Sequence record: MZ779063.1
Length of the DNA stretch: 64,000 nucleotides
Direction: 5' to 3' (one strand)
Position numbers and translations under genes: made by a program. Below, in pieces: positions 46,358-63,825 of the stretch (within the stretch, counting starts at the first letter, position 1; every line of letters starts with the position of its first letter). The notes beneath the pieces were generated by a model, which ran no database searches, had not been told where the DNA came from, and saw only the letters and a list, made by a program, of their open reading frames with translations.

Positions 46358-46389
46358 TCCCCTAATACTAAATTAATAGTATTAGGGGA
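46358..46389. terminator. Bidirectional terminator, CCCTAA stem family
   Basis: 13-bp stem TCCCCTAATACTA / TAGTATTAGGGGA, loop AATTAA, convergent genes. Confidence 0.85.
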
Positions 46390-46400: not shown

Positions 46401-48566
46401 TTATTTATTAATTCTACTGTATATATGACAAAATGTTATGTCGTCTAAATTTACTGTTTCATTTAATAATCTTTCTTTCCAGTTCTCTCCAAGATCATAT
46501 ATCATTTCTGATAATACTTTTTCTGTATAATTTTGTAAAGGAACTAGTTTAGCATCATATTTACTGAATTTTCGTATATAGTTTTCATAACTTAAATCGT
46601 CAGATACATATTTAATAGATTCAAATATATAAGGTTTAAATATCATATATCTATCAAAATCCATATCATCATGAATCATCAATAATTTAGGTAAATAATA
46701 AGATTCAATAGGTACTTTAATTTCTAATCCTTGAATATTATTTTTATAATGAACTTCATATTTTAATTTTCTATCTTTCCAATCAAAATTATTAAGAGCA
46801 TAATGTATAGGTTCTTCTTTAAGGTAATAATCAATTCCATCATTACTATATGATTGAACACTATCAAACGATCTAGGATCGTTATCTGAATCAATATTAT
46901 TTAACTCATTATCTTCATTAGTCATTACATAATCTTCATATATAAAATAATAATTTTTAATATTAGGATACACTAAAGCTTTTTTATTGACATTTGAATG
47001 TTTTTTGACTGTATTTGAATTTATAATAAGAGAATCAAATAAGAAATTATTTTTGTCAGGTGTAGTTATTTGTATATCATTTTCTTTTCTAAGATAAATT
47101 TCATTGATATATTCATCTATATTCATTTCTGGAAATCTCTTATATAAACCTAATGTACATAAATTGTTATGATCTTCATGAACTTTAGCAATATAATTTT
47201 TACCATTAATATTTACTACCGCTTCTTCTTGTTTAGAATTCTTTATTTGATCATTATTAAATTTTCTTCTAAATAATATTTTGAAATCATACATTCCAGA
47301 TTCAGATAAATTTAAAGTATTCTTAACAGTTCCTGTAGTTAAAGAAAATTTATCAGATAAACTACTAACTTCTTCTATATTTGTAGTTTTATTATCTATT
47401 TTAAAAGTTTCTAAAGTTTTACCGGTTCCTTGATTATAAGAATCATTATCTATATAGAAATCTTTAATAGGTACTATAGTTCTAGTTCCTACTTTAAAGT
47501 GATTTTCTTGTTTTGAATAGAAAGGATTTTTAGCTTCAGGAACTTCAACTTCTTCTAATAATATAACGTTTATATCATTTTCTTTAGTAGAGAAGTTTTT
47601 ATCATATTCAAATTTAAATGTGTGAATTCCTTCTTCTAAATATAAAGGCGGTTCTTCAAAATATTCATCTTTAGCATCATCATATTTTTCTAATATAGAT
47701 CTAAACCATAATAAACTTTTATTCGTAGGAGTTCTAAAATAACTTCCCACATTATCTATAAATACTTTATTCACTGTACCATTATTATAATGATTTCCAG
47801 CTTTAAATCTTACTTCATAATGGGATGATTTAGGAATATTAATTTTCATTTCTAATATTCCATCTTCTATAGTCACATATCCTTTTCCTAAGAACCTATC
47901 ATAACCTGAATCTCTCTTATAAGCTCCATCAAATTCACTTTCTCTAGTTCTATAAACATCACCTAGATATGCATCATAGAATATTCTTCCATCTTCTACT
48001 AATCCATTATATATAATGCCATCTATTAATTCAGATTCTTTTAATATTTTTTGATTAAACGCATAGTCTTTAGGATAATTATTATTATCTTTATAGACTG
48101 GTGGATAAGGTTCAATTTTCACCTCACTTTCTACCAGATTGTTAAAATTTAAATCTTCATACTCAATATTACCTATATAATTGGTATCATATATTCTTTC
48201 CATTTTACCTAAGTAATTATAATATATTGTAAATAAATCATATTTTAATTCACCAATTAATTCATAAGGTCTTTCTTCATAAACTAAAACATCTTTAGTT
48301 AATTCATTTTGATTTAATATAGGATTTTCAATTCCATATTCTTTTTTAATATAGGAAGCTGATTCAAATAAATTAACCTCACCATCTTCTTTAAAAGATA
48401 ATTTTTTGTATTCATCAGAATCAAATTCTATTTTTAATAATAATTTTTCTTTCTTTTTAGTTTTAGTTGTAATCAATGGTCTATTTTCATTATCTTTAAT
48501 TTTAGTAATAACGATTTCACCATTATTATTTTTATCAATTAACTCTTCTATTCTATAAAGCTTCAT
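46401..48566 (-). CDS. Protein with tandem CBM6/CBM35-like jelly-roll domains
   Basis: INIPKSSHYEVRF...VFIDN...LYLEEGIHTFKF, and a second LNLSESGMYDFKI...VNING...FDSLII unit. Confidence 0.5.
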   Translation of the reverse strand: MKLYRIEELIDKNNNGEIVITKIKDNENRPLITTKTKKKEKLLLKIEFDSDEYKKLSFKEDGEVNLFESASYIKKEYGIENPILNQNELTKDVLVYEERPYELIGELKYDLFTIYYNYLGKMERIYDTNYIGNIEYEDLNFNNLVESEVKIEPYPPVYKDNNNYPKDYAFNQKILKESELIDGIIYNGLVEDGRIFYDAYLGDVYRTRESEFDGAYKRDSGYDRFLGKGYVTIEDGILEMKINIPKSSHYEVRFKAGNHYNNGTVNKVFIDNVGSYFRTPTNKSLLWFRSILEKYDDAKDEYFEEPPLYLEEGIHTFKFEYDKNFSTKENDINVILLEEVEVPEAKNPFYSKQENHFKVGTRTIVPIKDFYIDNDSYNQGTGKTLETFKIDNKTTNIEEVSSLSDKFSLTTGTVKNTLNLSESGMYDFKILFRRKFNNDQIKNSKQEEAVVNINGKNYIAKVHEDHNNLCTLGLYKRFPEMNIDEYINEIYLRKENDIQITTPDKNNFLFDSLIINSNTVKKHSNVNKKALVYPNIKNYYFIYEDYVMTNEDNELNNIDSDNDPRSFDSVQSYSNDGIDYYLKEEPIHYALNNFDWKDRKLKYEVHYKNNIQGLEIKVPIESYYLPKLLMIHDDMDFDRYMIFKPYIFESIKYVSDDLSYENYIRKFSKYDAKLVPLQNYTEKVLSEMIYDLGENWKERLLNETVNLDDITFCHIYSRINK

Positions 48567-48596: not shown

Positions 48597-50057
48597 TTAT
48601 GATAATGCACTTCCAATAGCACTGTTAGGATGAGGGTTTGCTTGAGATTTATAACCGTAAATAGTATCATCTATTTGTTGTTTAAATACTCTTCCTTTTA
48701 ACACTTGCATACTTCTTGAATACTGATTTTGCATATTAATTTGAGCTTTATCTATAATTGATAGTTGATCTCTTCTAATACCTGCTAAACAATCAATATA
48801 AGAAATTAAACCTGTATTAAATTTCATACGTTGGAATGATTTTGATGCCATTAAGTTAGGGTACATATCTCTTACATTTAGTGAAACTGTTATTTCTCTA
48901 GGGAAACCATCTGCTGTCCATGTACCTTCTTCTCCACGAACTATATTCATTGATGTTATAATACCTGTATGACATTCAAATCTACCAGGACAGTTTGCTC
49001 TAACAATGAATGGTTGTTTATATGAGAAAATAGAATCTTGTAAAGGTAAAGCTAATACCAATAATGACATGAACGGTAAATATACATTTTCAAAAATAGA
49101 TTGAGGATCTCCATACGCACTATAGAATTTAAATTCTAAGTTATAAGTACGGTCAAAAGTTGAGTTCATCCATACATCAGGATAATACATTGATGCTCCA
49201 TCTAAATTTTCCATAAAGTTACCAACTATACCACCTAATACTGGCATATTTGCAACCATATCATTAATGCTATCTTTAATAGATCTTGTAATTTTACCTA
49301 AAATAGAAGCTCCTCCAATACGAGCCATTTCTTTTTCTTCACGTATTTCTTGGTTTTTATTATTAATCTGAGAAGCTATATCAGATTGATTATACTCATG
49401 CATTGCTGATTCAGATACACTAGTAGCTTTATCCGCATAATAAGCTAAACCATAGTTTTTGTCATCTAAAGATCCACCTAAATCAAATGATCCTTTTAAT
49501 CCCATAGATGCATGTAATTGACTTCCCATGGTTTGTACGTATTTATAATATTCACTCATTTTAGGTTCAAAACTAACCATACGTCCATCTTTAGTATTAC
49601 CTATACCAACTAATCCAGCTGTAGTATTTGCCAATCTATCTAAACCTTCTCCAAAACTCCATAATTTACCTTCACCCGGTTTACCAAATAGTTTACCGTT
49701 CAATTTAGGCATACCTGGCATTATAAATACTAAAGGTAAGTCTAATTCAAATGTTCTTTTATATATTCTTCTATTAGGGTCATCTAAACTAGAGTAGTAC
49801 ATAGGCATTCCAAATACATCTAGTTCACCTTTAACATTTCTCAATTTAGTTTTATCGGAAGCACCATATTCAGAAATATTACGAGTATTACCTGTAGCAT
49901 CTTTAAATACACCTAAATCATTCTGACTTGGATCATATTCTTGGAAATCATAATCACCTTTAGTTTCATCAGGTTTAGGTATTAAAGCAATATCGTCATC
50001 ACTAATATCTAAAGGTTTCGTACTACCTTTTTCATTTTTATCTTTTTCTTCTGCCAA
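48597..50057 (-). CDS. Baseplate hub / tail-tube initiator-like virion protein
   Basis: YPDVWMNSTFDRTYNLEFKF...PFIVRANCPG...GIITSMNIVRG...GFPREITVSLNVRD resembles T4 gp48/gp54-like tube-cap folds; directly after the tape measures. Confidence 0.55.
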   Translation of the reverse strand: MAEEKDKNEKGSTKPLDISDDDIALIPKPDETKGDYDFQEYDPSQNDLGVFKDATGNTRNISEYGASDKTKLRNVKGELDVFGMPMYYSSLDDPNRRIYKRTFELDLPLVFIMPGMPKLNGKLFGKPGEGKLWSFGEGLDRLANTTAGLVGIGNTKDGRMVSFEPKMSEYYKYVQTMGSQLHASMGLKGSFDLGGSLDDKNYGLAYYADKATSVSESAMHEYNQSDIASQINNKNQEIREEKEMARIGGASILGKITRSIKDSINDMVANMPVLGGIVGNFMENLDGASMYYPDVWMNSTFDRTYNLEFKFYSAYGDPQSIFENVYLPFMSLLVLALPLQDSIFSYKQPFIVRANCPGRFECHTGIITSMNIVRGEEGTWTADGFPREITVSLNVRDMYPNLMASKSFQRMKFNTGLISYIDCLAGIRRDQLSIIDKAQINMQNQYSRSMQVLKGRVFKQQIDDTIYGYKSQANPHPNSAIGSALS

Positions 50058-50098
50058 TATTATTCACTTCCTTTAATTTCATTTATTTTGAAATAATA

Positions 50099-50138
50099 TA
50101 TGCGGATATGACATATAATAAACTGTCATATCCGCATA
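50099..50138 (-). terminator. 15-bp hairpin after tape measure A
   Basis: TATGCGGATATGACA / TGTCATATCCGCATA perfect stem; weak U tract. Confidence 0.6.
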
Positions 50139-50188
50139 ATCTTTACTATATAAAAGAGTTGTTCTTCTATTTATTCAAATTATTAACT

Positions 50189-53100
50189 TTATTTACCTGA
50201 AAATACTGGTATAGCAGATCTCACGTCAATATTGAATTGATCTCCATAAGCTCTATTAATAGCTTCTTGAAGATCAGAATCTCCTTGTGAAGGTCCATTA
50301 TTATTACCTGGATTGATAATAATAGTACTTCCGTTTCCATTATTACCACCTGTACCAGGATTATATGGATCATTAGGATTAACAATGACATTACCATTAT
50401 TATTACCATTATTGCCATTAGCTCCATTGTTTCCATTTTGTCCATTATTTCCAGTATTGCCGTTGCTACCATTATTTCCATTTGCACCGTTAATAATATC
50501 TGGATTATTTTGTAAATTATCTTTAATGATTCTATCAATTTCTTTATTAATTTCTTTGATAATTACATTACCTTTAGAATCAACTAAGTCACCTTTATTA
50601 TTGATAGTCGTGTTATTAAAGATATTATCACCTTTATTAATAGTAGTGTTATTACCTTTAAATGACATTTTTCTAAGTTGATCTAACATCTTAGCTGTAT
50701 TTTTATCAATATTACTTGTATGCTTAGTAATTTCATCTAAATCCATACGTTTTTGCTTATCAACTTTCATAGGTCCATTTTTGTAAGATACTGTAGAATT
50801 GTTATAATTATTGGTAATATTATAAATATTTCTTACAGTATTATTATCGCCTTGAATTGTTTGATGAGTAGTAGAATTGTTGGTTGTAGTTCCTGGTGAA
50901 GTATAGTTATTATTAACTATAGTAGAATTAGTATTTCCACCATTATTAATTACAGTACTTCCGCCAGAAGAACTTCCTGATCCTTGTTGTTGAGATTGAT
51001 TTGGCATTGATGAAGATGACCCATCTTGACCATTTGCACCAGATTGACCATCAGAACCACTAGATCCTGATGAACCTGAAGAACCAGAGTCTCCTGATTC
51101 CCCATCTTCTCCATCAGACCCTGATGAACCTGATTCAGATTTCTTCTTACCAGCTTCAGATTTAAGCTTTTCTTGTTGTTCTTGGTCTATTTTTTTGGCT
51201 TCTTCGTAATCAATACCATATATTTGAGCGTAACGTTTCATTAAACGGTCATTTAATGCTTCTTGTTCTTCTTCATCCATACGGTTATCGTCACGTCCAG
51301 TAATGGATCCGTACCAAGTACCATTTTTGAAACTATATTCTGAAGCTCCTGGTGAATCTCCTGATTCTGAACTTTCATCACTTGAGCTTCCGCTATCAGA
51401 ACCTCCTTCACCATATCTCATATAACCATCAATTCCCCATTTAGGGTTTTTATATTTATTAGCACTGTTAATAACAACACCATCAACACCATTAGCCTCT
51501 ACTTGTTTACCTCCACCAATGTACATTGTAACGTGTTCTATATTATCACATAAAATAATGTCACCTGGTTTAAGGTCTTTGGGGCTTTTAGCTTTAATTT
51601 TCTTAAAAGGCGTATCTCCATTCCAGAATGAATGAGTAGTGGCGTTCTTATCCATATCTAAACCAGCTTTTACATAAGCTCTAGCTATCAAACTAGAACA
51701 GTCAAAAGAATTAGCTCCTTGTCTGTTAGGTTGTGAATATTTTGCACCAACCTGTTTCTTAGCCCATGCAACAGCTTTATCAATTTTGGCTTTTTGACTT
51801 CCGCCACCGCCACCGCCTCTTTGTATAGGTGGATTACCTTTAATTATTCCTGTTCTACGTGAGCTTTTGTTTTTTCCTGATGTAGATGAAACCATGTTAG
51901 AAAATTTACTAATATCATTTGTATCAGCTATAACTGAACCGGCCCCACCTCCGCCAGCTCCTCCACCTTTTTTCTTAGTAGATTTTTTATCAGAACCACT
52001 GAATTTTTTGATAAAAGCATTACCAGAAGAAATACGTGACCCTAAAGCAGGAACACCGGCTCTTTCATATTTACTTACCCAAGAAGCAGCTGCTTGTTCT
52101 ACTGTTTTAGTAGTTTTAAGGTGAGATAAGGCAGCACTTTCTGATCCACTTAATTCTTTCCATAAATAATCCAATTGTAAGTCTAAATCAGACCATTTTT
52201 TACCTTTTTCTTTAGCATATTTCATTAAACCTTGTCTACGAGTATTATCCCATTGAGCAATACCAATACCATAACCAGAAATAGCACTATTAGCTTTTGC
52301 TTCATCAAATTTGGCATCTCCTTGAACACGATCAGCTTTCATTCCAGATTCATGTGCAAAGTTACCTAAAACACCAGCAACTTGTTCATTAGAAAGTCCT
52401 TTATCTTTAAGGAAATTCCAAATTTTCTCTGCACCTTCACCTTCAATTCCAGCTGCATCACTTCCTGAAGATGATGCTGAACTTGATGAAGATGATCCAG
52501 ATCCGGCCATAAATCCAGCCATGATATCATTCATCATACCGCCTAATTTATCGAACCAATCACCAATAGTATTAACTACTTCTCCTCCTGGTTCATTTAT
52601 ATCTAGTTTAGATTTTTTCTTTTTCTTCTTACTTAATAAAGAATAGAAAGGTGACATACGCATCATAGTCTCTGCTAATTTCTTAGGTGTTTTCTTAAGT
52701 TTACTCATGAGATTTTTAGGCATTAATTTATTCATTTGATGACCAATTCTACCCATTACAGATAATGGAGAATCTTTCATAGCTCCATCTACATCTTTCT
52801 TGATAGAATCTCTAGTTTTTCCTGCTGACTCTTCTACTTGTTTTTTAGCATCTTTACTAGCTTTATCTGACATGCCTTGCATTTCTGCTATTTCTTTTTT
52901 AGCTCTATCAGATGCTTCGCCTTCAATTCCTTCTTGATATGAACTTAATTCTTCTTTACTAGCTTCAGTCATTTCTTTACTCATATTTCCCATTTCTTCT
53001 TCATGACTAGAGAATTTATCTTTTAACCATCCCCAACCAGATTTAATTAATCCAGTTCCTCCTTGAAGAAGCATAGAAGTCATACCAGTTAAATTACTTA

Positions 53101-56077
53101 AGCCTTTACCAGCTAATGCCAAAGGAGCCATCAATAACATAGAAGCTCCGCCAACAACTTTTTTAATCAATCCTCCAAAGCCACTTGATTTTTCTTCCAT
53201 AGCCATATCAGTTTGATCTCCAAAGCTTTTAGCCATACCTGTAGTTTTCTGAACCATATTCATACCTAAACCAAATGCCGGTTTTACAATTGATTTATAT
53301 AATCCCATTCCAGCTAATCCCAATAAAGGAGTAGAAGCTAATAATGGATTATCTTTAATAAAACCACCTATAATTGAAGATTTATCTAAAGAACCATTCA
53401 TTTTAGTATCAACTGAAGGATCAACTGCAAAATTTTCTCCACCAGGTTGAGTTGAATCTAATTTTTCTTGTTCTTTTTTAGTCTTAGAAGGGTGATCATT
53501 GAATCCAATAATACTACCTAATGTCTTAATTGGGTGTTTTAAAGATTCAATAGGGTTGGCTATAGTTCTAATAATGTCTGGGCCAGCTAATGCTAATGAT
53601 GCAATTTGTCCAACTACAGGAATAGCATTTACACCAACACGAGCACCTACTTTAGCTCCTGCTTTAAGTAATCCTTTACCTATAGCTTTTTTAGCACCTT
53701 TTCCAGCAGCCATTTTAGCAGCTCTAGCTTTAAGTTTCCCTTTAAGTCTACTACCTGCACCGGCCATTAAAGCACCACCGGCAGCAAATTTACCAGTTAA
53801 AGAACCACCCATACTAGTTATTTTACCACCTAATTTAGTATTAGATAATTTACCTATTTTTTCTTTAACAAGGTCTTTACCTTTATTTTTATATTTATCA
53901 AATTTTTCTTTGACATGTTTATTACTATCAATAAGATCTTGAACGTCTCCTACTTTATCTGCAAAATCTTTATCATCTGAAGTGTCAGAAGCTTTCGTTT
54001 GTCCATTTTCTAAAGTTTGTTCATTAGGAATAATAGTAGATCTATTATCCTCATCATTAATATTATCATTTCTTCTTGTACTATCAGATTGTCTACTTTG
54101 ATTTGGACTAGAAGATGTTGTAGAAGTATTTTTATTTAAAGTTTGTTCTCTAGGATCTATTTCTCTAGAAACATTTTCATTAGGTTGATTTACATCACTA
54201 ATTATACCACTTGAATTTTTATCACTAGAATTACTACTATATCTTTGTTCAGGTATTTTATTATTTATTCTAGATACAATTTGTTTAATTTCACTTATAT
54301 CTTTATTAACGATATTAAAGCTAATATTATCATATACTGTATCTTTATTAGTGCTAAGAATACCGCTTCTATTTTCATTATTTAATTTAGAAGTAATATT
54401 TTTAGAAATACCTTTTCTTTGATTTTCATCATTAAGAGCATTTATAGAACTACTAGATAATCTCTTCTTAATATCTTTAGATTCTTTATTTAATTGCATT
54501 CTAGTTTTAGTTAAACTAGTTTTAGCTTCTTTATCATTAAATAATTTATCTAGAAGAATATTAAATGGATCATTAGGATCATTTGATTTAATTTGATCAA
54601 GTTCATTGCTTTTATTAATATTTTTAGAAATGATTTCTTTAATCTTAGATGTAGCTTTATTTTTATTATCTTCATTACTGAAAAGATCAATACCCATTTC
54701 AGAAGCTATATTTTCAAATTCTTTAGTAAAACTAGATTCTTTGATAGTTTTATTAACTTTTTCTTCTATATCATCTTTAATAGACTTGGAAGTTTTAAAT
54801 GAACCTGAATCATAGTCATAATGAATTTCTTGTCCATCTTCTGAAGTTAAACCAACTATTTTAGATAGATAACCAGGTATAACTGTATTAAGCGTATTAT
54901 GAGTTTCCACATCAAAAGCAACTTTTTGATGTCTGTCTTTTCTGTTAGCAGTTGATATACCACCAGTTACACTATCAAATATTTTGTCAATTAATTTACT
55001 TTTACCTGATTTAACATCTTCAAGAAGATCATCTCTTCTTTTATCTCTTTTTCTTTGTTTATCACCATTATCATTATCACTAAAAGGACTAAATTTCTTA
55101 TTAGCAAATTTACCAACAGCTTTTTCTATGAAAGTATTTTCATTATTAAGAAAATCAAAAGCTTTACCTTTAGCTACATCAACTAAACCTAAACTTTTAA
55201 TACCTTGTTTTTTAGAACCAATAACTTCTTTAAGTAATTCAGTTCCTTGTTTTTTAATAAAGTCTTTAGCTTTATCTTTGAATCCTTCTTCTTGAGATCC
55301 TTCTAATATACTTGATAAAGTTATATTAGATAAGAATAGATCTTCTAATGAATTACTATTTTTAATTTCAGATATATTCTTAATTTTAGTATTCTGTCTA
55401 ATAGCATTACTAGTTTGAATTAAACCATTTAAGTTTTGGAACATACTTTCTCTAATACTATCGTTAGCTTCTCTCATTAAATTAAGATTATCAATCATAG
55501 AAGTAAATCCGGTAGTATTTATTTGAGAAAGATTAGATACAGAAGAAGTTAATAGAGCTGTAGATTTAGCAGAAGAACCACCATCATTAATAACTGTTGT
55601 AGAAGATACTATTTTAGATTTATTATCATCTTCTTCATCAAAGTCATCAAATTCAAAATCTCCATCTAAAGAATCATCTGTGTCAGAATCCATATCTGAA
55701 AAACTATCATCAAAACCAAAATCTTCAAAATCACCACCGATATCCATACCCATGTTATTGAAGTCTTTTAGTGATCCTTTATCTTGGATAGTTTCTCCAG
55801 TTTTAAAGGTATTTTTAGTAGATTCTAAAGCTTCTTTAGATAAATCTTTAGTAGATTCACTTATCTTTTGTAATTGTTTTTTCTTTTTATTCTTTAATTC
55901 TTTGACAGCTTTTAATGGATTATTTTGATCCATCATACGTTTCATGTCATTAGACTTCATTTTATTTAAATTTTTGTTAAATTCAATATCTATATATTTT
56001 CTAGAAGATTTAGAGGAGGAGTTATTTCTAAACTCCTTCTCTATCTTGCTAGTGTTAAATTTCTTATCTCTAGCCAA
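50189..56077 (-). CDS. Tape-measure-like virion protein A with phage-tail lysozyme and NlpC/P60 domains
   Basis: IWNFLKDKGLSNEQVAGVLGNFAHESG...GIAQW (Phage_lysozyme2, ~52000-52440); FDCSSL...PGDII..EHVTMY (NlpC/P60, ~51410-51795); FDVETH..VIPGYL conserved block. Confidence 0.85.
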   Translation of the reverse strand: MARDKKFNTSKIEKEFRNNSSSKSSRKYIDIEFNKNLNKMKSNDMKRMMDQNNPLKAVKELKNKKKKQLQKISESTKDLSKEALESTKNTFKTGETIQDKGSLKDFNNMGMDIGGDFEDFGFDDSFSDMDSDTDDSLDGDFEFDDFDEEDDNKSKIVSSTTVINDGGSSAKSTALLTSSVSNLSQINTTGFTSMIDNLNLMREANDSIRESMFQNLNGLIQTSNAIRQNTKIKNISEIKNSNSLEDLFLSNITLSSILEGSQEEGFKDKAKDFIKKQGTELLKEVIGSKKQGIKSLGLVDVAKGKAFDFLNNENTFIEKAVGKFANKKFSPFSDNDNGDKQRKRDKRRDDLLEDVKSGKSKLIDKIFDSVTGGISTANRKDRHQKVAFDVETHNTLNTVIPGYLSKIVGLTSEDGQEIHYDYDSGSFKTSKSIKDDIEEKVNKTIKESSFTKEFENIASEMGIDLFSNEDNKNKATSKIKEIISKNINKSNELDQIKSNDPNDPFNILLDKLFNDKEAKTSLTKTRMQLNKESKDIKKRLSSSSINALNDENQRKGISKNITSKLNNENRSGILSTNKDTVYDNISFNIVNKDISEIKQIVSRINNKIPEQRYSSNSSDKNSSGIISDVNQPNENVSREIDPREQTLNKNTSTTSSSPNQSRQSDSTRRNDNINDEDNRSTIIPNEQTLENGQTKASDTSDDKDFADKVGDVQDLIDSNKHVKEKFDKYKNKGKDLVKEKIGKLSNTKLGGKITSMGGSLTGKFAAGGALMAGAGSRLKGKLKARAAKMAAGKGAKKAIGKGLLKAGAKVGARVGVNAIPVVGQIASLALAGPDIIRTIANPIESLKHPIKTLGSIIGFNDHPSKTKKEQEKLDSTQPGGENFAVDPSVDTKMNGSLDKSSIIGGFIKDNPLLASTPLLGLAGMGLYKSIVKPAFGLGMNMVQKTTGMAKSFGDQTDMAMEEKSSGFGGLIKKVVGGASMLLMAPLALAGKGLSNLTGMTSMLLQGGTGLIKSGWGWLKDKFSSHEEEMGNMSKEMTEASKEELSSYQEGIEGEASDRAKKEIAEMQGMSDKASKDAKKQVEESAGKTRDSIKKDVDGAMKDSPLSVMGRIGHQMNKLMPKNLMSKLKKTPKKLAETMMRMSPFYSLLSKKKKKKSKLDINEPGGEVVNTIGDWFDKLGGMMNDIMAGFMAGSGSSSSSSASSSGSDAAGIEGEGAEKIWNFLKDKGLSNEQVAGVLGNFAHESGMKADRVQGDAKFDEAKANSAISGYGIGIAQWDNTRRQGLMKYAKEKGKKWSDLDLQLDYLWKELSGSESAALSHLKTTKTVEQAAASWVSKYERAGVPALGSRISSGNAFIKKFSGSDKKSTKKKGGGAGGGGAGSVIADTNDISKFSNMVSSTSGKNKSSRRTGIIKGNPPIQRGGGGGGSQKAKIDKAVAWAKKQVGAKYSQPNRQGANSFDCSSLIARAYVKAGLDMDKNATTHSFWNGDTPFKKIKAKSPKDLKPGDIILCDNIEHVTMYIGGGKQVEANGVDGVVINSANKYKNPKWGIDGYMRYGEGGSDSGSSSDESSESGDSPGASEYSFKNGTWYGSITGRDDNRMDEEEQEALNDRLMKRYAQIYGIDYEEAKKIDQEQQEKLKSEAGKKKSESGSSGSDGEDGESGDSGSSGSSGSSGSDGQSGANGQDGSSSSMPNQSQQQGSGSSSGGSTVINNGGNTNSTIVNNNYTSPGTTTNNSTTHQTIQGDNNTVRNIYNITNNYNNSTVSYKNGPMKVDKQKRMDLDEITKHTSNIDKNTAKMLDQLRKMSFKGNNTTINKGDNIFNNTTINNKGDLVDSKGNVIIKEINKEIDRIIKDNLQNNPDIINGANGNNGSNGNTGNNGQNGNNGANGNNGNNNGNVIVNPNDPYNPGTGGNNGNGSTIIINPGNNNGPSQGDSDLQEAINRAYGDQFNIDVRSAIPVFSGK
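51120..51352. repeat. 233-bp segment duplicated at 56597-56829
   Basis: Same length, no indels, 3 amino-acid differences in 78; most nucleotide differences are synonymous. Confidence 0.95.
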
Positions 56078-56100
56078 TTATTAGTTCCACCTCCTGCTAT

Positions 56101-59100
56101 CTATTTCAATTCTTCTAATAAACGGTCTAATTCTTTAGTAGATGCTAATGTATTTTTATCTATATTAGCTAACATTCTTACTAAATCATCTGAATACCAT
56201 AATTTTTCATAATCATAAGTATAACCAGAGTTACCATTTTCAATTTTAGAATTTTTATGATTGTTTACAATTTTATTATAATGGTTAGTTACTCGGTTTT
56301 TACCTTTTATAAATTCTTTATTCACATTTTCATTATTAATGACATTACTTTGTCCATTTTGATAATTGTTATTAACTGTTTTAGTATTTTTACTACCTTG
56401 ATTGTTAACAGCATTATTACCTCTATTAATATTAGAAAAACCACTATTAGCTAATGTTGGTAATTGGAATACCGGAGGATTTCCGATATTCTTATTATTA
56501 GTTATTTGAGATCTTGATTCTTGTGGTTTAGATGGCGATGCTGAAGAATCAGAACTATCTGAAGATTCTTCATCTCCAGAATCTTCACTTCCAGATCCTG
56601 ATGAACCTGATTCAGATTTCTTCTTACCGGCTTCAGATTTTTTCTTTTCTTGTTGTTCTTGATCGATCTTTTTAGCTTCTTCATAGTCAATACCGTATAT
56701 CTGAGCATAACGTTTCATTAATCTATCATTTAATTCTTCTTGCTCGTCTTCATCCATACGGTTATCATCACGACCAGTTATTGAACCATACCAAGTACCA
56801 TTTTTGAAACTATATTCTGAAGCTCCTGGACCTGATTCACTATTTCCTTCTTTATCATCTTCATCACTTTTAGAAGCAGAAGAACTAGATCCTCCTCCGC
56901 CAATAGTCTCTTTAATTGTACTTGCTAAAGCTTTCTTACCTTTACTATTCGGATGAACACCTAAACCATCATTTTCAATCATATCAGAACTGGCTTTACT
57001 ATTCCAGTCTATTACTTTTGAATCTGAACTTTCAATAGCTTTATTAGTTGCTTCAATAATATCAGAAATATCAGATCCTTTTCTCTTTTCAGGATCTACA
57101 TACGTATTAACAAAGTATACATCTGCTTTGTCATACATATCTTCTATTTCTTTAACATTACCTGTAGTTAATCCTCCATTAGTACCTAATTGCACTATAA
57201 TTGCATTTTTATCTTTATTGTATTTCTTTTTGTTGGATTCTAATACATTTTTACCATTAGGCGAAGGACCTCCACTTGAATAAGTTCTTGAAGGAACTGC
57301 ATTAATTTGAATTTTACTAACTGATTTTCTTATTTCAGAAGCAGCTCCTGCACCTATGGAGTCACCTACCATAAATACTTTATTGTAGGATTTACCTCCA
57401 CCGCCTCCACCAGTTACCGTTTTAGCTATTTTTCTAATGGCTTCAGGAGTATTACTGAATGGAAATCTATCTTTAATAAAATTATCAACTCGTTTTTTAA
57501 TCTTCTTAATATTGTATATATCTGAATTGTAAATCTTAGTTTTTTCTTTTTCTGCCTTTTCTTCAGTTTTCTTCTGATTATTTTCTAATTTATTTAAAAG
57601 AGCTCTATCATTTCTTACTTCTTTAGCTCTTTGTCTTTTAGCTTCTTTGACTTCTTGTGATTTATAACCACCGTCTACCATTTTTACAGTAGGATCAAAT
57701 GCAGCTCCACCTTTTTTACCTTTTTTAGATTTTCCAGCTTTACTACCTTTGTCTTCATCACTACCGCCTTTAGAACCTTTTAAAGGAGCTTTAATCCAAG
57801 GTGATGGATCTACAGAGTTTTTCTCCATAGCCCAACCGCCTGGTTTACCTTTATTTATTTGGAAGTGAAGGTGACCTGAACCAGCAGTATTAGCACCAGT
57901 GTTACCTGAGATTGCTATAACTTGTCCAATTTTAACTTTATCGCCCTTTTTAACTAATTGTTTAGTTAAATGCATATACGTACTATAGATGTTACCAGGT
58001 GATTTAACTTGAACAATATTACCTCCACCCGGATCGGTGTTTGATCTAATAACTGTACCTTCTACCATACATTTAACTTTTTGACCTGGAAGCATACCTA
58101 TATCAATACCATAGTGCTTTCCTCCGTTAAATGATAAACCAGAATAGTTACCATATGGTTGCCAAATCGCAGCACTTGGTATTTTTTTCATCCAAGCACC
58201 AACTGTGCCATCTGGTATTTGATTAATAGAACCAGGTACAATTTTCTTAGTATTCATATCTACTTCGCCAGCTTCACCTGAAACTTCAGGTTCACCGTCT
58301 CCACCAGAATCGCCACCACTGGAATTTTTCATTTTAGACATTGCAACAACCATTTCTTCCATTTTAACTAAGAAACGACTGAACCAATCTCCGATTTCTC
58401 CTTTACCATATTTAGAGAAATCAATTCCGCCTTTAGCTATTTGATACAAACTACCTAGAGGTGTACTCATGAACATATCTTTTTGAATATCTTCTTCAGC
58501 TTTTGGTCCTGATTTCATTTTATTATCAGTAATTGTTTTAAACATATCTCCACCAACTTTAGCTAGTGGGAACATAGGAGATGCTCTAAACATTAGTTTA
58601 GAAGTACTTAATATTAATCTACCTAAACCTGTTTGATCTTCAGTATGTTTTTCTTCTTTACTTTTAGCTTCATCTTCTATTTTATCACCAGGATGTTCAC
58701 CAATTCCGAAGAAACTACCTAATGTTTTAATAGGGTGTTTTAATGATTCAATAGGATGTTTAATAGTCTTGATAATATCAGGAGCCCACATTGCTGCACC
58801 AATTACTGGTCCAACAAATGGTATGAATGGTAATGCTGTTTTCAATCCTGCTTTTAATGCAAATTTTCCTCCAGCTTTCATTGCACCTTTACCGAATAAT
58901 TTATTTTTAGCTTTACCTATAGCACCAAAGGCTTTTCCTCCAAGTTTCTTAGCTCCACCAAATAAACCTTTACCGATAGATTTAGCTCTGTTAAAACCTT
59001 TAGAAGCAAATTTACTTATTCCTTTAGTTGCAGCTGAAGCATTCTTTTTATTAAATATTTTAGATATACCACTTTTAGCTACTTTCCCTATAGTTTTACC

Positions 59101-62073
59101 GGCACTTAATCCTTTTTTAACTAATCCTGCACCTTTACCTATAACCATTTTACCTAAAGATTTAACAGAAGGTAATTTATCTTTAGCAAATTTTCCAATA
59201 CCTTTAAATACATTACCTATTTTTTTAGGAGCACCTTTAATACCTCTAAATAATTTTCCTAATCCAAATTTTCCAGCTATATTTTTAATTCCGCCACCTA
59301 TTTTACCTAACATGCCAGGCATACTAGTAAAGAATTTACCTATTCCGCTTGGTAATAATTTAGATAATAATTTAGGTCCAAATTTAGCAGCTAAGAATCC
59401 TCCAGCACCCAACATTGCAGCGTTACCTAAGAATCCTCCAGCAGATGCTAAGAATCCTTTCTTACCAGGTTCTAGATCTTTTTTACCATTTTTACCTTTC
59501 ATTAATGAACCTAATACAGCTGCAGAAGTTCCAGCAAATAAAACTGGTCCCATTTTACTAAAATCAAGCATACCGTTCATCATTTTTTTAGCACCAATGG
59601 ATTTTTCAGCTTCTCCACCTTTTCCAAAGTTTATATTACCTCTAATGGATTCAGCAATTTCTTTTTTATTGGAACCTGTTATTTTAGACATAACATCTTC
59701 CCCAGATTTTCCTGCATCGGCAGTTGAAAGGCCTTGTTTCATTCTTTCTAAAGCTCCAGCATCTTGAGAATCTTCCATATCTTTTTTAATAGTTGGATCA
59801 TTGCCAAAAGCAGTTTTAACTAAATCGATTATTGTACTCTTAGCTTTCTTTTCTTTTTCCTCTCTAGTTAAATCATCTATTGTTTTGCTTGGTTCTTTAG
59901 TGTAAGTATCTTTATTAGCCTCATTATTATTAATTGATAATTTATTTAAACCAGGAATATTCTTCATTAAATCCATTAATGGATTATTATCTATAATACT
60001 AGATTGATTTATATTCTGATAAGGATATTCATCATCTTGATCTGGTTGAGTATTTTCTTGAGTTGAATTAACTCTACTAGATGCAGAAGAAACCATATCT
60101 TTAATAGCACTTGTAGGATTTTCTTTGTATTCTTTAGCTTTATTAACTGCATTAGAAAGACTATTTAATTTATCCATTACAGAAGCATGAGCTTCATTAC
60201 TTCCATTATTTCCACTTAGAATAGGGAAATTTTTACCTTTATCTATGATATTATTGATCGTATTAACTTTATTATTAATAAATTCTTTATTATTATTAAT
60301 ATTATCATTACTGAAATTATTGTCTAATTTTCTTTCTATTTCTAAGAAAATATTTTTAATTTCTTCTAAATCACTATTTTCCCAGTTAATATTACCAAAA
60401 TCTTTAATCTGATTAATATTATCATTATTATTAGATCTAGAATAAGTCGAATTAGATTTATTTAAACCTTCTATTTCAGTAAATGCCATTATTCTTGAAT
60501 TATCTTTTTTATCAAGTGTTTTTGAAATAGATTTCTTAATATTGAATAAATCAGTATTAAATTTAGCTGAATTCTTTTCAAACACTTCAGATAATGACTC
60601 AGTATTAACATTTATATTTTTCTGATTAACTATTTCTTTAAGTTTAGAAGTTTTTTGGATAGGTTTGTCTATTTTAGTTAATTCAGCTAAAACTTCTTTA
60701 GTTCTTTCTTCATCATTATCTAATTTAGATAATAATTCTTTACCTAAATAAGTATCTTTAAAATTAAATAAAGAATCTGATTTAATCTTATCCAAGTCTT
60801 TTTTCTTAGCCGAACCTCGATTTTCCCAAACGCCTTTTCGGTAATTATAGATACTACCTAATTCAGCATTATCTGCTAATCCGCCTGAACGACCTTCTTT
60901 TTTGGCTATCAAATTACCTTGAAGTCTAGATAAGAAGTCTGGTATAACTTTATTAATAGACGTATGAGATTCCATATCAAATTGAACAGGAGTATCTTTT
61001 TTACGTTTATTTTTTAGAGAAATACCGCCTTTACCATCACCTAATAACTCTTCTTTAAATTGATCTAATCTACCTGAAAGAGCATTTCCTAAATTAGATA
61101 TATACTTATTATCATTGCCAGTTAATCTTTCTAAACCTTTAGTAAGTTTACTATCTTCATCAAGATTTCTATTAATAAGCATAGAACCTATATTTTGTGG
61201 ATCAAATCTTTTATTCAATCTATTAAATATATTTTTATTATCGCCTTCAGGATCATAACCACCAATATCACCGTAAAGAAGTTTATTAAATGCAATTTTA
61301 GCTCCTTGAGTTGCAGCAAATTCAATAGGATTTTTAGCTACACCCATCAGCATTGATTTAAGTTGGTCTCCGGACATCATACCCATTAATAAATTTTCAG
61401 GATTAGTTTTCTCATCCAAATATTTTAATAAACTAATATTACCATTCAATATAGAATGTAATTTACTTTGTTTATTTCTTTTGGTATTTTCTTCCATTAT
61501 TGTATTTTGATATATACCATCCTGTATTGTACTTAAATTTGATAAAGCTGAATCTACGAGACTGTTAGTTGCTTGCATTGATAAAGAATAATTATTCAGT
61601 GCAATATTTGTTCCAACAAATCCTCTTTGATTTATCTCAGCTAAATTATTCATTGCTACTAGAGGTGAATTTGTTATTTTAGATTTCTTTTTATCTGATA
61701 AACTAACAATTTCAGATTTAGTCCCATCAGGATTATCAATATATTCTGTTACTGATTCATATTCAGGTTTTTCATTAGATAATTTTTCATTACTACTTGA
61801 AAAAAGATCATTTTCATTAGATTTATTTTTTAGTGTTTTTAATAAATCATTAGTAGAACCTTTAACTTCAGAAAATTTCTTTAATCTTCTTTCATCATTG
61901 TTGAATAATTTTAAACCTGAATCTCCCACTATAGCATCTAATGATGGATTAGATTTTATAAACGCATTAAAAAGAATACGACCAGTATTTTTAGAAGCAT
62001 TTTTAATGACAGTTGATTTATTATTATTTTCTAATTGTCTAATATTCTTTTTATTTCTATTATTTTTAGCCAA
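56101..62073 (-). CDS. Tape-measure-like virion protein B with M23 peptidase and SGNH (OatA-C-like) domains
   Basis: HYGID...YMHL...HLHF (M23, ~57800-58170); GDS...LGTNG...DW...DGLGVH (SGNH, ~56900-57390); FDMESH..VIPDFL block shared with protein A. Confidence 0.85.
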   Translation of the reverse strand: MAKNNRNKKNIRQLENNNKSTVIKNASKNTGRILFNAFIKSNPSLDAIVGDSGLKLFNNDERRLKKFSEVKGSTNDLLKTLKNKSNENDLFSSSNEKLSNEKPEYESVTEYIDNPDGTKSEIVSLSDKKKSKITNSPLVAMNNLAEINQRGFVGTNIALNNYSLSMQATNSLVDSALSNLSTIQDGIYQNTIMEENTKRNKQSKLHSILNGNISLLKYLDEKTNPENLLMGMMSGDQLKSMLMGVAKNPIEFAATQGAKIAFNKLLYGDIGGYDPEGDNKNIFNRLNKRFDPQNIGSMLINRNLDEDSKLTKGLERLTGNDNKYISNLGNALSGRLDQFKEELLGDGKGGISLKNKRKKDTPVQFDMESHTSINKVIPDFLSRLQGNLIAKKEGRSGGLADNAELGSIYNYRKGVWENRGSAKKKDLDKIKSDSLFNFKDTYLGKELLSKLDNDEERTKEVLAELTKIDKPIQKTSKLKEIVNQKNINVNTESLSEVFEKNSAKFNTDLFNIKKSISKTLDKKDNSRIMAFTEIEGLNKSNSTYSRSNNNDNINQIKDFGNINWENSDLEEIKNIFLEIERKLDNNFSNDNINNNKEFINNKVNTINNIIDKGKNFPILSGNNGSNEAHASVMDKLNSLSNAVNKAKEYKENPTSAIKDMVSSASSRVNSTQENTQPDQDDEYPYQNINQSSIIDNNPLMDLMKNIPGLNKLSINNNEANKDTYTKEPSKTIDDLTREEKEKKAKSTIIDLVKTAFGNDPTIKKDMEDSQDAGALERMKQGLSTADAGKSGEDVMSKITGSNKKEIAESIRGNINFGKGGEAEKSIGAKKMMNGMLDFSKMGPVLFAGTSAAVLGSLMKGKNGKKDLEPGKKGFLASAGGFLGNAAMLGAGGFLAAKFGPKLLSKLLPSGIGKFFTSMPGMLGKIGGGIKNIAGKFGLGKLFRGIKGAPKKIGNVFKGIGKFAKDKLPSVKSLGKMVIGKGAGLVKKGLSAGKTIGKVAKSGISKIFNKKNASAATKGISKFASKGFNRAKSIGKGLFGGAKKLGGKAFGAIGKAKNKLFGKGAMKAGGKFALKAGLKTALPFIPFVGPVIGAAMWAPDIIKTIKHPIESLKHPIKTLGSFFGIGEHPGDKIEDEAKSKEEKHTEDQTGLGRLILSTSKLMFRASPMFPLAKVGGDMFKTITDNKMKSGPKAEEDIQKDMFMSTPLGSLYQIAKGGIDFSKYGKGEIGDWFSRFLVKMEEMVVAMSKMKNSSGGDSGGDGEPEVSGEAGEVDMNTKKIVPGSINQIPDGTVGAWMKKIPSAAIWQPYGNYSGLSFNGGKHYGIDIGMLPGQKVKCMVEGTVIRSNTDPGGGNIVQVKSPGNIYSTYMHLTKQLVKKGDKVKIGQVIAISGNTGANTAGSGHLHFQINKGKPGGWAMEKNSVDPSPWIKAPLKGSKGGSDEDKGSKAGKSKKGKKGGAAFDPTVKMVDGGYKSQEVKEAKRQRAKEVRNDRALLNKLENNQKKTEEKAEKEKTKIYNSDIYNIKKIKKRVDNFIKDRFPFSNTPEAIRKIAKTVTGGGGGGKSYNKVFMVGDSIGAGAASEIRKSVSKIQINAVPSRTYSSGGPSPNGKNVLESNKKKYNKDKNAIIVQLGTNGGLTTGNVKEIEDMYDKADVYFVNTYVDPEKRKGSDISDIIEATNKAIESSDSKVIDWNSKASSDMIENDGLGVHPNSKGKKALASTIKETIGGGGSSSSASKSDEDDKEGNSESGPGASEYSFKNGTWYGSITGRDDNRMDEDEQEELNDRLMKRYAQIYGIDYEEAKKIDQEQQEKKKSEAGKKKSESGSSGSGSEDSGDEESSDSSDSSASPSKPQESRSQITNNKNIGNPPVFQLPTLANSGFSNINRGNNAVNNQGSKNTKTVNNNYQNGQSNVINNENVNKEFIKGKNRVTNHYNKIVNNHKNSKIENGNSGYTYDYEKLWYSDDLVRMLANIDKNTLASTKELDRLLEELK

Positions 62074-62118: not shown

Positions 62119-62167
62119 TCTATCAGATTCATATAGATTAAATTAAAAGATAAAAAAAAAATAAAAT

Positions 62168-62219
62168 ATTCACCCTAACACAAATAATCCAATTAAGGAC
62201 TAAATGTGTTAGGGTGAAT
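62168..62219 (-). terminator. Long terminator hairpin, CCCTAA stem family
   Basis: 15-bp ATTCACCCTAACACA / TGTGTTAGGGTGAAT, internal loop, inner TCC/GGA, loop AATTAA; T tract on the minus strand. Confidence 0.8.
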
Positions 62220-62224: not shown

Positions 62225-62893
62225 TTATTTATTCTTGACTACATCTTGTATCTTATTCAATACACTATCTAAATTTTTAGTATAAACTAAATTAGTAAAT
62301 AATACATCTAATAAAAATACTATAGTTTTATGTGTAATGTAAAATAAATTATTAACTATTTTATCTTGTTCTTCTTCGCTAATTTCTTCTTTATCTTGAT
62401 GATATTTTCTATTAGGTAATGAACGTCTACTTAATCCCATATATTCAACTAAATATTCATTTAATTTCGTTTTAATATCATCAAGTCTATCATAATCACT
62501 AATACTCTTATCGTTAGCTAAAAGAAGAGTTTTGTTATAATCGATATTACTTGTTTGAAGAAATTTATTGTCCATATATTTACTTAATAATGTTGAATTG
62601 ATAGATATTAAGTAAAGAATAATGTCTAATAATTCTTTTGATGCATTATTAATATATTCAAACTTCTGAGACTGATTGTATTCAGGATTATTAGTAATTT
62701 GATTTATTTCATAATTAAATTCATGAATTTCTTCAACTATTTGAGGTATGAATCTATCTACCATTTGATGTAATTCCTCATTACCAAAATCGTAACGAGA
62801 AATTACATTTACATGATTTATATACATAGCACTTATATCTAATTCAATAGATTCTCTTTTCTTATAAAAATGTTTCATTGACAATTCCTCCAT
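62225..62893 (-). CDS. MazG-like all-alpha NTP pyrophosphatase
   Basis: IVEEIHEF ... KELLDIILYL fits the EExxE / ExxD metal-binding pattern; SD GGAGG. Confidence 0.6.
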   Translation of the reverse strand: MEELSMKHFYKKRESIELDISAMYINHVNVISRYDFGNEELHQMVDRFIPQIVEEIHEFNYEINQITNNPEYNQSQKFEYINNASKELLDIILYLISINSTLLSKYMDNKFLQTSNIDYNKTLLLANDKSISDYDRLDDIKTKLNEYLVEYMGLSRRSLPNRKYHQDKEEISEEEQDKIVNNLFYITHKTIVFLLDVLFTNLVYTKNLDSVLNKIQDVVKNK

Positions 62894-62907
62894 GTTTTTA
62901 ATTGGTC

Positions 62908-63825
62908 TTATCTAAAACGTTTTTTGTATTCTTCTTCATATTTAGCATTGATATCTGAGACTTTAATATCTTTACCATCATCTGTTTTAAAGTTATCTTT
63001 ATCAATTTCTTCACCTTTAATTACTTCTTTATCTTCATTTTCTACTTTAGCTACCATAGCAATATGAGGTGGTACAAATGATGCTTGTTTAACTGTTTCC
63101 ATTTTAGCATTATGAATACGACCTTTAATTAATTTACGAGAGAAATGTACATTTTTCATAGTTAATGTTTTACCTTTAACTAGTGCATTTTCTCTAAGTG
63201 CATCAATTTCATTAATAATATCACTTAATTCTTTTTTAGAATATCTATTATCTTCTAGATTTGCTACTAAGTCATTAATAAGTTCTTCTTTAGTATAAGA
63301 TTTCTCACTGAATTTTTTAACATTTTTCTTTCTACTAGTCATTTTCTTTTTACCAACCTTCTGATTTGATTTAGTTTTTGTACTTTGTTTCTTTTCTTTT
63401 AATACTGGATTCTTAACTTCTTCTTTAGTCTCTTCTTGCTTAGTTTCTACTTTATCCTCTTCTTGTTTAGTTTCTTTTTGCTTAATTTCTTTTGCTTTCT
63501 CTGGATTTAAACCTGAAGCTGTTACAGTTACTTTATCATAAGAACTTTCTGTTGGAATATCTTTAAGATTAATTTCAACATCTTTAAGTTCATCTGAATT
63601 GATGAAAATTTCTTTTTTATCATAATTAATCTTAATAACATCATCATCTTCAGGAATTAAAACTAAATTCTTTCTGTCATATTTCTCTGGAATAGTTTCG
63701 ATATCAAATGTAATTGTATCTCCTTCATATCCTTGTTCTTCTGATAATTTAATCTTAGCTGACTCTAATACAGTTAAATCCTCTTTTTCTTTTGTAACTT
63801 TCTTTCTTGTAATTGCCATATCCAA
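62908..63825 (-). CDS. HU/TF1-like DNA-binding protein with long N-terminal extension
   Basis: YTKEELINDL...SKKELSDII...LVKGKTLTM...IKGRIHN...FVPP resembles the HU fold (MTKxELI...GR.NP). Confidence 0.7.
   Translation of the reverse strand: MDMAITRKKVTKEKEDLTVLESAKIKLSEEQGYEGDTITFDIETIPEKYDRKNLVLIPEDDDVIKINYDKKEIFINSDELKDVEINLKDIPTESSYDKVTVTASGLNPEKAKEIKQKETKQEEDKVETKQEETKEEVKNPVLKEKKQSTKTKSNQKVGKKKMTSRKKNVKKFSEKSYTKEELINDLVANLEDNRYSKKELSDIINEIDALRENALVKGKTLTMKNVHFSRKLIKGRIHNAKMETVKQASFVPPHIAMVAKVENEDKEVIKGEEIDKDNFKTDDGKDIKVSDINAKYEEEYKKRFR

Follow-up and report, generated by a model that had tools for sequence, protein, structure and literature searches.

Why should a staphylococcal jumbo phage encode, one after the other, two giant proteins that share collinear sequence blocks and carry different cell wall enzymes in the equivalent place? 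The question is raised by a 64,000-nucleotide (nt) stretch of sequence record MZ779063.1 (the window), whose DNA is that of Staphylococcus phage vB_SauM-UFV_DC4 (DC4; 100% identity) and is 95-98% identical to that of PALS2, S6, Madawaska and MarsHill, all of them AR9/PBS1-related jumbo myophages. A first-pass annotation, made from the sequence, had read the two proteins, here called A and B, as tandem paralogous tape measures that split a four-enzyme cell wall toolkit. Taken as a whole, the explanation that we favour, with slightly better than even confidence, is that A and B are tandem paralogues of a single giant tail protein of the phiKZ gp181/AR9 gp203 type, in which a shared scaffold with a tape-measure-type role bears complementary wall enzymes.

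Shared scaffold and single-copy relatives

The two genes and the elements of their scaffolds lie at the following positions.

56101-62073, minus strand: paralogue B, UFVDC4_00260; 1990 amino acids (aa), TTG start; annotated 'tail tape measure protein'
50189-56077, minus strand: paralogue A, UFVDC4_00259; 1962 aa, TTG start; annotated 'tail lysozyme'
60325-61656, minus strand: N-terminal shared domain of B, residues 140-583; FD.ESH..VIP at 60919-60987
54254-55543, minus strand: N-terminal shared domain of A, residues 179-608; FD.ETH..VIP at 54854-54922
58714-58845, minus strand: hydrophobic Gly-rich IP.VG segment and PDII of B, residues 1077-1120; candidate membrane-inserting segment
53513-53638, minus strand: hydrophobic IP.VG segment and PDII of A, residues 814-855; from the BLASTP block and the translation
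58381-58392, minus strand: GDWF motif of B, just upstream of the enzyme cassette
52553-52564, minus strand: GDWF motif of A, just upstream of the enzyme cassette
51014-51130 (13 triplets) and 50399-50488 (10 triplets), minus strand: collagen-like G-X-Y runs of A

Alignment of B with A by BLASTP, with composition correction, bears out the shared collinear blocks that had been claimed, for which alignment significance had been set as the test. Three blocks are significant: an N-terminal block (B residues 140-583, A residues 179-608; E 1e-9) that includes the FD.E(T/S)H..VIP motif, the hydrophobic segment with the PDII block (B 1065-1151, A 804-879; E 6e-17), and the C-terminal module and tail (B 1749-1985, A 1576-1801; E 2e-39). 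The same three blocks join the paralogues in each of the six Staphylococcus jumbo phages compared (DC4, Madawaska, LY01, SA1, AH12 and Machias, the sample for all six-phage comparisons below), a recurrence that argues against chance resemblance and makes the duplication older than the Madawaska, LY01, SA1, AH12 and Machias lineages. On this alignment evidence, A and B share ancestry and are true paralogues.

Both proteins also contain the smaller shared elements named by the first-pass annotation: GDWF motif, poly-Gly linkers and N/S-rich tails. The PDII sequence likewise translates as described, but the ranges quoted for it (53513-53554 in A and 58714-58755 in B) cover only the last 14 codons of a block (PDII...KTLGS) that spans 53513-53581 and 58714-58782, respectively. 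Among B orthologues, the IP.VG/PDII segment is 89-98% identical. The G-X-Y runs are confined to A orthologues, every one of which has runs of 5-13 triplets, while B orthologues and single-copy relatives have none; the runs are devoid of proline and rich in serine and asparagine, and form a candidate triple helix.

Beyond the staphylococcal phages, the N-terminal domain of A aligns to AR9 gp203 (E 3e-8), and the FD..VIP block of B aligns to the same protein at the equivalent position. A word-based protein search using A's N-terminal region returned five proteins, and a PDB sequence search with both scaffolds (the first 1200-1290 aa) returned no relative. The next gene downstream of A is also shared with distant jumbo phages.

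48597-50057, minus strand: homologue of the gp182-type baseplate spacer; 486 aa

This spacer family occurs in 196 phage records, and its profile matches both the PHIKZ182 chain of the phiKZ baseplate (9xqs_K, E 1.6e-26) and a 'tail tube initiator complex protein' from a second phage of solved structure (11lx_H, E 4.5e-27). Its AlphaFold model is of low confidence (pLDDT, the predicted local distance difference test, 53.6), and the baseplate fold matches of that model were used only since the profile search agreed independently. In the phiKZ structural atlas, six copies of gp182 form a spacer ring between tube initiator and hub, in the central channel. A giant gene lies upstream of the gp182-type gene in PhiPA3, phiR1-37, AR9, BpSp and LPJP1, as a single copy in all five; it adjoins the gp182 homologue in PhiPA3, AR9 and BpSp, is separated from it by a small endolysin gene in phiR1-37, and is annotated in LPJP1 as three consecutive open reading frames (ORFs). 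Two giant genes are present in ten Staphylococcus jumbo phages (DC4, S6, PALS2, Madawaska, MarsHill, Machias, AH12, PB50, SA1 and LY01) and in one metagenomic relative, L011. Relatives from Bacillus are single-copy, so that a tandem pair is not general to Bacillus and Staphylococcus jumbo phages.

L011 (Logan ERR8055733, a 67.6-kb contig, positions 345-11947) has two adjacent giant genes of 1496 and 1684 aa, both related to A, B and AR9 gp203, the N-terminal 550 residues of which are 25% identical (E 7e-30). A neighbour-joining tree of N-terminal regions gives bootstrap values of 59% and 45% for the placement of this pair relative to the Staphylococcus pair, and is compatible with one duplication as well as with two. 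None of the ten Staphylococcus jumbo phages has a broken copy of either ORF, and catalytic residues other than those of the SGNH domain are kept in the six examined; a decaying duplicate was rejected on these grounds.

Wall enzymes, cassette exchange and the conserved module

The enzyme domains of the two paralogues, and the unit of B that contains its pair, are listed here.

52001-52432, minus strand: phage tail lysozyme (PF18013) of A, residues 1216-1359; Glu1243
51455-51715, minus strand: NlpC/P60 domain of A, residues 1455-1541; Cys1460, His1515
57793-58179, minus strand: peptidase M23 of B, lysostaphin/LytM type; HxxxD (H1320, D1324) and HxH (H1401, H1403) intact
56902-57381, minus strand: SGNH domain of B, OatA C-terminal-like; Ser1572 (GDS), Asn1632 (GTN), His1707
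56854-58293, minus strand: enzyme cassette of B, residues 1261-1740; recombination unit

The four domain types, and their allotment to A and B, had been named correctly: PF18013, NlpC/P60 and M23 are recognised by Pfam, and SGNH by PDB match and a structural model. Both enzyme pairs do lie in an equivalent slot, between the GDWF block and a conserved C-terminal module, and the catalytic motifs of all four domains are intact in DC4. In A, PF18013 scores 123.9 bits against a Pfam cut-off of 28.2 (E 7e-36), and Glu1243, conserved in the six orthologues, is probably its catalytic residue, judging by its position in the HES motif. This lysozyme weakly matches PDB 3CSQ/3CSR 'Morphogenesis protein 1' (E 1.5e-4), which we take to be phage phi29 gp13. 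The NlpC/P60 domain scores 42.9 bits against a cut-off of 23 (E 5e-11), keeps Cys1460 and His1515 in the six phages, and has PDB matches that include the diffocin hub-hydrolase 8V3W_H (E 8.5e-7) and the CwlO DL-endopeptidase; since A orthologues also match Amidase_5, the stem-peptide bond that it cuts is uncertain. In B, the M23 domain (Pfam E 1.5e-21), with H1320, D1324, H1401 and H1403 conserved in the six orthologues, finds its best PDB matches in 5KQB (E 1.4e-22), presumably S. aureus LytU, followed by LytM and lysostaphin, which are glycyl-glycine endopeptidases. Plausible targets for the set as a whole are glycan strands, stem peptides, pentaglycine bridges and an ester bond.

The SGNH domain falls under the Pfam threshold (Lipase_GDSL, E 0.0085 with excised pieces). 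Its closest solved relative, matched by B residues ~1565-1725 at E 5e-10, is PDB 6WN9/6VJP, named in the fold-search table and in a review as the catalytic domain at the C-terminus of S. aureus OatA, a peptidoglycan O-acetyltransferase whose product gives the wall lysozyme resistance. An AlphaFold model built from 47 homologues (pLDDT 87.6, core >95) supports an alpha/beta/alpha fold, as all of its top fold matches are SGNH domains; the five best are OatA C-terminal domains from S. aureus and S. pneumoniae, the first with a target-normalised template modelling (TM) score of ~0.8. Ser1572, Asn1632 and His1707 are invariant or nearly so in the 47 homologues, while the block V Asp stands at H-5 (D-G-L-G-V-H) and not at H-3 (DxxH), as it also does in 32 of the 47, and block II has Ser where S. 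aureus OatA has Gly. Four residues past the catalytic Ser stands a Gly in the phage domain, where OatA has Asp. We assume this Asp to be the conserved one whose replacement raised hydrolysis about fourfold, and Gly at that position would fit an esterase role. Replacement of a conserved OatA Asp, for which the source gives no residue numbers, raised the rates of hydrolysis and of transfer. In the OatA-type family, SGNH is fused to a membrane acyltransferase-3 (AT3) domain that supplies the acetyl group; Pfam finds no AT3 domain in B or nearby, and by architecture the phage domain is therefore not an OatA-type transferase.

Among 50,697 phage records searched by tblastn, the SGNH domain occurs only in the ten Staphylococcus jumbo phages. 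It is 100% identical over query residues 1-178 in S6, PALS2, Madawaska and MarsHill, and local alignment of the SGNH segments places the catalytic Ser and His only in the clade that these four form with DC4. In Machias, AH12, SA1 and LY01, Glu or Asp replaces the Ser and Met or Thr the His, with the Asn and the fold signature kept, and the Machias segment has the same Ser and His substitutions when aligned independently to OatA; PB50 is grouped with these four solely because its match identity equals that of AH12 and Machias. By these residues, the SGNH domain of Machias, AH12, PB50, SA1 and LY01 is a dead copy, a pseudo-enzyme. The four-enzyme kit proposed at the outset is thus real in the DC4 clade, but the five other jumbo phages are without the SGNH catalytic Ser and His.

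The nearest relatives of this domain in an exhaustive HMMER search (37-44% identity) are not OatA proteins but hydrolases of 420-980 aa, in which SGNH is fused to a PF18013 lysozyme, often together with M23, CHAP, GH3 or glucosaminidase domains. That the enzyme types of A and B are elsewhere joined in single chains, belonging to machines that have to get through peptidoglycan, supports action of the two paralogues on the same substrate. Two of these SGNH and PF18013 hydrolases are encoded beside VirB4/TraG-type ATPases, and one cluster comes from Candidatus Saccharibacteria; proteins of this kind (P0010, P0015, P0022, P0173) may serve a type IV secretion-like system of these epibionts in piercing the wall.

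The enzymes of B have a history of their own. Windowed identity between the B proteins of DC4 and LY01 is 85-100% over residues 1-1260 and ~80% over residues 1741-1990, but 25-53% in between, and at the DNA level identity drops from 85-91% to ~50% near 58290 and recovers near 56800. The scaffold of LY01 B is 91% identical to that of DC4 and 54% to that of Machias, whereas its cassette is only 37% identical to that of DC4, and its M23 domain is 51% identical to that of DC4 and 89% to that of Machias. Cassette history thus differs from scaffold history, which indicates that the cassette was exchanged by recombination. The M23 domain of DC4 reaches 59-62% identity with its counterparts in the tape measures of phages, siphophages and prophages from staphylococci and mammaliicocci, and is closer to these canonical tape-measure domains than to the M23 of other jumbo phages. 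The A lysozyme, likewise, has relatives at 40-48% identity in staphylococcal phages (Twort, K-like and SPbeta-like), where they belong to tape measures or tail lysins. Single-gene relatives carry other enzymes in the same C-terminal slot, a VgrG3-like_C lysozyme in AR9 and BpSp and an SLT domain in PhiPA3 and phiR1-37. The mismatch of scaffold and cassette in LY01, the siphophage-like M23 and these other enzymes all uphold the suggestion of swappable cassettes; judged by such identities, the slot is exchanged among jumbo phages and with the tape measures of unrelated staphylococcal phages.

Beyond this slot lies the conserved module, which had been noted with a length of 78 aa and is real: its two copies form a direct repeat of 249 nt and are 88% identical in DNA and ~94% in protein.

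56581-56829, minus strand: module copy of B; 61-aa core = residues 1750-1810, 56644-56826
51104-51352, minus strand: module copy of A; 61-aa core = residues 1577-1637, 51167-51349

Across both paralogues of the six phages, the 61-aa core is 87-100% identical in protein and 80-91% in DNA, which makes the module the best-conserved segment of either protein. The gap between protein and DNA identity points to strong purifying selection and not to recent copying. Concerted evolution was rejected as the main cause of the likeness, as DNA identity within a genome (86-89%) is about that between genomes (80-91%). The module copy of SA1 A carries residues otherwise typical of B copies, which suggests local gene conversion between the paralogues in that phage. 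The module is absent from AR9, BpSp, PhiPA3 and phiR1-37; in LPJP1 its helical half is matched, though faintly (E 4e-4). The simplest reading of this conservation is that both paralogues would bind the same partner through the module, a candidate docking element.

Role in the tail and competing explanations

Protein length bears on a tape-measure-type role. In the six phages, B has 1973-2020 aa and A 1900-1963 aa, with A within ~3% of B, and each paralogue keeps its length to within ~3% although the scaffolds are only ~55-62% identical and distant orthologues differ by 40-110 residues of indels in each direction. Tape measures follow a rule of ~0.15 nm of tail per residue. By this arithmetic the full-length proteins would correspond to ~295-300 nm and their non-enzymatic ~1690 aa to ~250 nm; measured tails are 233-237 nm. 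A rough estimate for a lumen of 4 nm x 235 nm (~2950 nm3), at 1.21 nm3 per kDa, has three copies of each protein filling about half of it, so that they would fit only if the chains were largely extended. In an earlier review, phiKZ gp181 is listed as a tail-associated lysin.

In the mechanism that we propose, A and B would be made late, in one transcription unit with the spacer, and at a low level, which the TTG starts of both genes suggest. They would dock by their C-terminal parts in the central channel of the baseplate and extend up the tube lumen as length-constrained proteins of the tape-measure type. Contraction would then expel them and open the wall locally: the M23 domain of B would cut pentaglycine bridges, its SGNH domain would act as an esterase, most plausibly on 6-O-acetyl-N-acetylmuramic acid, the lysozyme of A would cut glycan strands and its NlpC/P60 domain the stem peptide, after which the hydrophobic segments would enter the cytoplasmic membrane. 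Duplication would have spread four bulky catalytic domains over two chains, with ruler length kept in each. A more specific version for the DC4/S6 clade holds that B has acquired a catalytically competent SGNH domain related to the OatA of the host itself, that this domain, delivered through the tail along with the enzymes whose action it enables, strips the 6-O-acetyl groups by which S. aureus peptidoglycan resists muramidases, so that the A lysozyme can cut, that A and B co-assemble through the 61-aa module, and that the dead copies of sister phages bind the same ligand; we put this forward tentatively, as possible but well short of probable.

Several observations weigh against a tape-measure-type pair with four working enzymes. 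Neither protein was detected by liquid chromatography-mass spectrometry in virions of DC4 (15 proteins) or SA1 (52 proteins, including sheath, capsid and portal), and the DC4, SA1, BpSp and PALS2 papers report no detection of A, B or their counterparts. (Phage JS1 was considered as a source of virion evidence and discarded as an unrelated 143-kb phage.) A and B match no Pfam tape-measure family (PF10145, PF20155 or equivalent), whereas the tape measure of a staphylococcal siphophage, phiIPLA35 gp50, does match PF10145, and PHROG 'tape measure' matches fall only on the enzyme domains. The phiKZ atlas modelled neither gp181 nor any tape measure, so that a location in the lumen is only putative even for phiKZ, and a tube lumen of ~4 nm would be crowded by the folded domains, 15-20 kDa each, of six chains. 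As to the chemistry, the canonical block V Asp is displaced in the DC4 SGNH domain itself, and since that domain is dead in five of the ten phages, ester cleavage is not essential to the design. The 'hetero-oligomeric ejected needle' of the first-pass annotation is unsupported: neither protein was detected in the virion proteomes, and the needle of phiKZ consists of the spike gp164 and the hub gp101. We infer the tape-measure identity, the virion presence and the hetero-oligomery of A and B.

The most serious competitor assigns the ruler function to one paralogue, most likely B, which would fill the lumen and set tail length, and makes A a derived lysin, anchored at the tail tip or baseplate, in which no more than the docking parts of the scaffold survive. 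Existing annotations divide the roles in just this way (B as tape measure, A as 'tail lysin'); only A has the collagen-like runs and a longer C-terminal tail, which suggest a different quaternary arrangement; A varies somewhat more in length than B (1900-1963 against 1973-2020 aa), and the two L011 copies differ by 188 aa. However, all elements of the scaffold persist in A, the N-terminal domain and IP.VG/PDII segment among them, and the length of A, held to within ~3% of that of B in six divergent phages despite indels, would be hard to explain if length were irrelevant. We consider this division of labour a minority possibility, distinctly less probable than the paired-ruler explanation.

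Two further explanations seem to us improbable. A and B might be alternatives, with virions taking one, the other or mixtures, to give a mixed population for differing host walls. The near-identical docking module could let them compete for one site, and host walls vary in O-acetylation and cross-bridge chemistry, but the genes share a transcription unit, the gap of 23 nt that separates them contains no regulatory element, neither copy is lost in any phage, and the enzyme sets are complementary, not redundant. Less probable still, A and B would be internal head (ejection) proteins or soluble factors of lysis from without, the tape-measure label being a habit of annotation, as might be argued from a scaffold with no tape-measure family match, no solved homologue and no detection in virions. 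Against this, distant jumbo phages keep the giant gene next to that of the baseplate spacer, phiKZ gp181 has been reported to be tail-associated and the sheath and tube genes are neighbours, and the enzyme domains are most similar to those inside the tape measures of other staphylococcal phages. Paralogous tail proteins of the tape-measure type, each with its own share of the wall enzymes, remain the explanation that we prefer.

Gene neighbourhood and comparison with known systems

The remaining features of the neighbourhood are as follows.

46401-48566, minus strand: 721-aa ORF, directly after the spacer gene and last before the terminator
46358-46389, no strand assigned: bidirectional terminator-like hairpin that ends the string of B, A, spacer and 721-aa ORF; annotated as a terminator in Madawaska
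62150-62216, minus strand: terminator-like hairpin with T-run, upstream of B; its positional counterpart in Madawaska carries a terminator annotation
42226-45378, plus strand: tail sheath, converging on the terminator at 46358-46389
45532-46338, plus strand: tail tube (PF23806), converging on the same terminator
62225-63825, minus strand: two conserved genes, 305 and 222 aa, upstream of B with the terminator between

The hairpin upstream of B implies that B opens a new transcription unit, in which B, A, the spacer gene and the 721-aa ORF follow at short gaps with no terminator in between. The start of A lies 23 nt past the stop of B and is preceded by AGGAGG; a B-A readthrough fusion was considered unlikely, since the reading frames of the two differ and A is served by a strong ribosome-binding site of its own. 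In SA1, too, both paralogues have TTG starts. Sheath and tube genes at 4-8 kb from the pair mark a tail gene neighbourhood. The 721-aa ORF has no family, PDB or PHROG match and is restricted to the ten Staphylococcus jumbo phages and Listeria phage LPJP1 (26% identity). PHROGs and Pfam gave nothing usable for the 305-aa and 222-aa genes, whose position would, speculatively, fit tail assembly chaperones.

G+C content is 0.32-0.34 in the C-terminal halves of A and B (50000-54000 and 56000-60000) against 0.25-0.26 in the N-terminal halves, which probably reflects Gly/Ala-rich composition and not foreign origin. Insertions seem to have struck the spacer gene repeatedly: that of Machias (20766-23877) is joined from two pieces and has a transposase ORF inside, likened to CasX by HHpred in the record, and that of AR9 (15791-18126) is joined from three pieces with two small ORFs inside. 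In L011, the giant gene pair is followed by a spacer homologue that carries a CHAP domain; this uncultured jumbo phage lineage thus has a wall hydrolase on the baseplate spacer itself.

The literature already notes 'two potential tape measure proteins' in these phages, and a tail lysozyme and an M23-bearing tape measure are listed in the DC4 paper; no mention was found there of the paralogy, the SGNH/OatA likeness, the active and dead alleles, the cassette exchange, the module or the spacer identity. Among known systems, T5 pb2, reported as a tape measure with muralytic and membrane-fusing activities as well, is a mechanistic template for an ejected ruler that opens wall and membrane; unlike A and B, it is the product of a single gene of a siphophage with a Gram-negative host, and no sequence relationship to it was found. 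The OatA C-terminal domain of S. aureus shares with the B SGNH domain the GDS Ser, the block III Asn and the block V His, but it is an O-acetyltransferase fed by a fused AT3 domain, and its block V Asp stands two residues nearer the His. An SGNH/GDSL esterase-type domain also occurs on a staphylococcal phage tail tip, at the C-terminus of phi11 Gp44 (Tal); unlike the B domain, it sits on a tail-associated lysin and is CE2-type carbohydrate esterase-like, not OatA-like, and tblastn with the B SGNH domain did not retrieve it. According to the phi11 paper, adsorption of that phage involves the 6-O-acetyl groups of muramic acid. The multi-domain SGNH and PF18013 hydrolases of type IV secretion-like loci hold in one chain the enzyme types split between A and B, but are cellular proteins of 420-980 aa with no ruler scaffold. 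Like A, 'Morphogenesis protein 1' (3CSQ/3CSR) and the diffocin hub-hydrolase (8V3W_H) arm the tip of an injection device with both a glycan cutter and a peptide cutter; these, however, are short tip or hub proteins and not rulers.

Closest in gene arrangement are phiKZ gp181, PhiPA3 gp213, phiR1-37 g083, AR9 gp203 and BpSp gp263, likewise giant proteins (1797-2553 aa), whose genes lie upstream of a gp182-type spacer gene, directly so except in phiR1-37, and which have a peptidoglycan-cleaving domain in the C-terminal third. A hydrophobic Gly-rich IP.VG-type segment is common to A, B and the AR9, BpSp and phiR1-37 proteins, and AR9 gp203 (1925 aa) has its FD..VIP block at the same position as A and B. 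In contrast to the staphylococcal pair, each of these is present in one copy with one glycan-cleaving domain (SLT or VgrG3-like_C), and the group has none of the 61-aa module, M23, SGNH and PF18013.

Closest in enzymes are the tape measures of staphylococcal siphophages and K- or Twort-like myophages (such as phiIPLA35 gp50, phage K ORF55 and that of Twort), proteins of ~1350-2070 aa with embedded wall hydrolases, their M23 domains being 46-62% identical to that of B and their PF18013 domains 40-48% to that of A. An active muramidase domain is reported for the phiIPLA35 tape measure. The tape measures of this group differ from A and B in being encoded by a single gene, in having a canonical PhageMin_Tail/TMP_3 scaffold and in having no SGNH domain. 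Tape measures with built-in wall hydrolases are thus already well known. To them the DC4 pair would add the duplication of a single gp181/gp203-type gene, accompanied by a division of the wall-degrading functions between its products; a recombination unit whose history can be traced; through an OatA-related domain with apparently active and dead alleles, a possible tie to the lysozyme resistance of staphylococci; and, in the 61-aa module that hardly varies in either paralogue, a candidate for a common docking element. If A and B share one tail, they would constitute a rare two-component tape measure and a natural example of a contractile injection machine that gained enzymatic payload at unchanged length.

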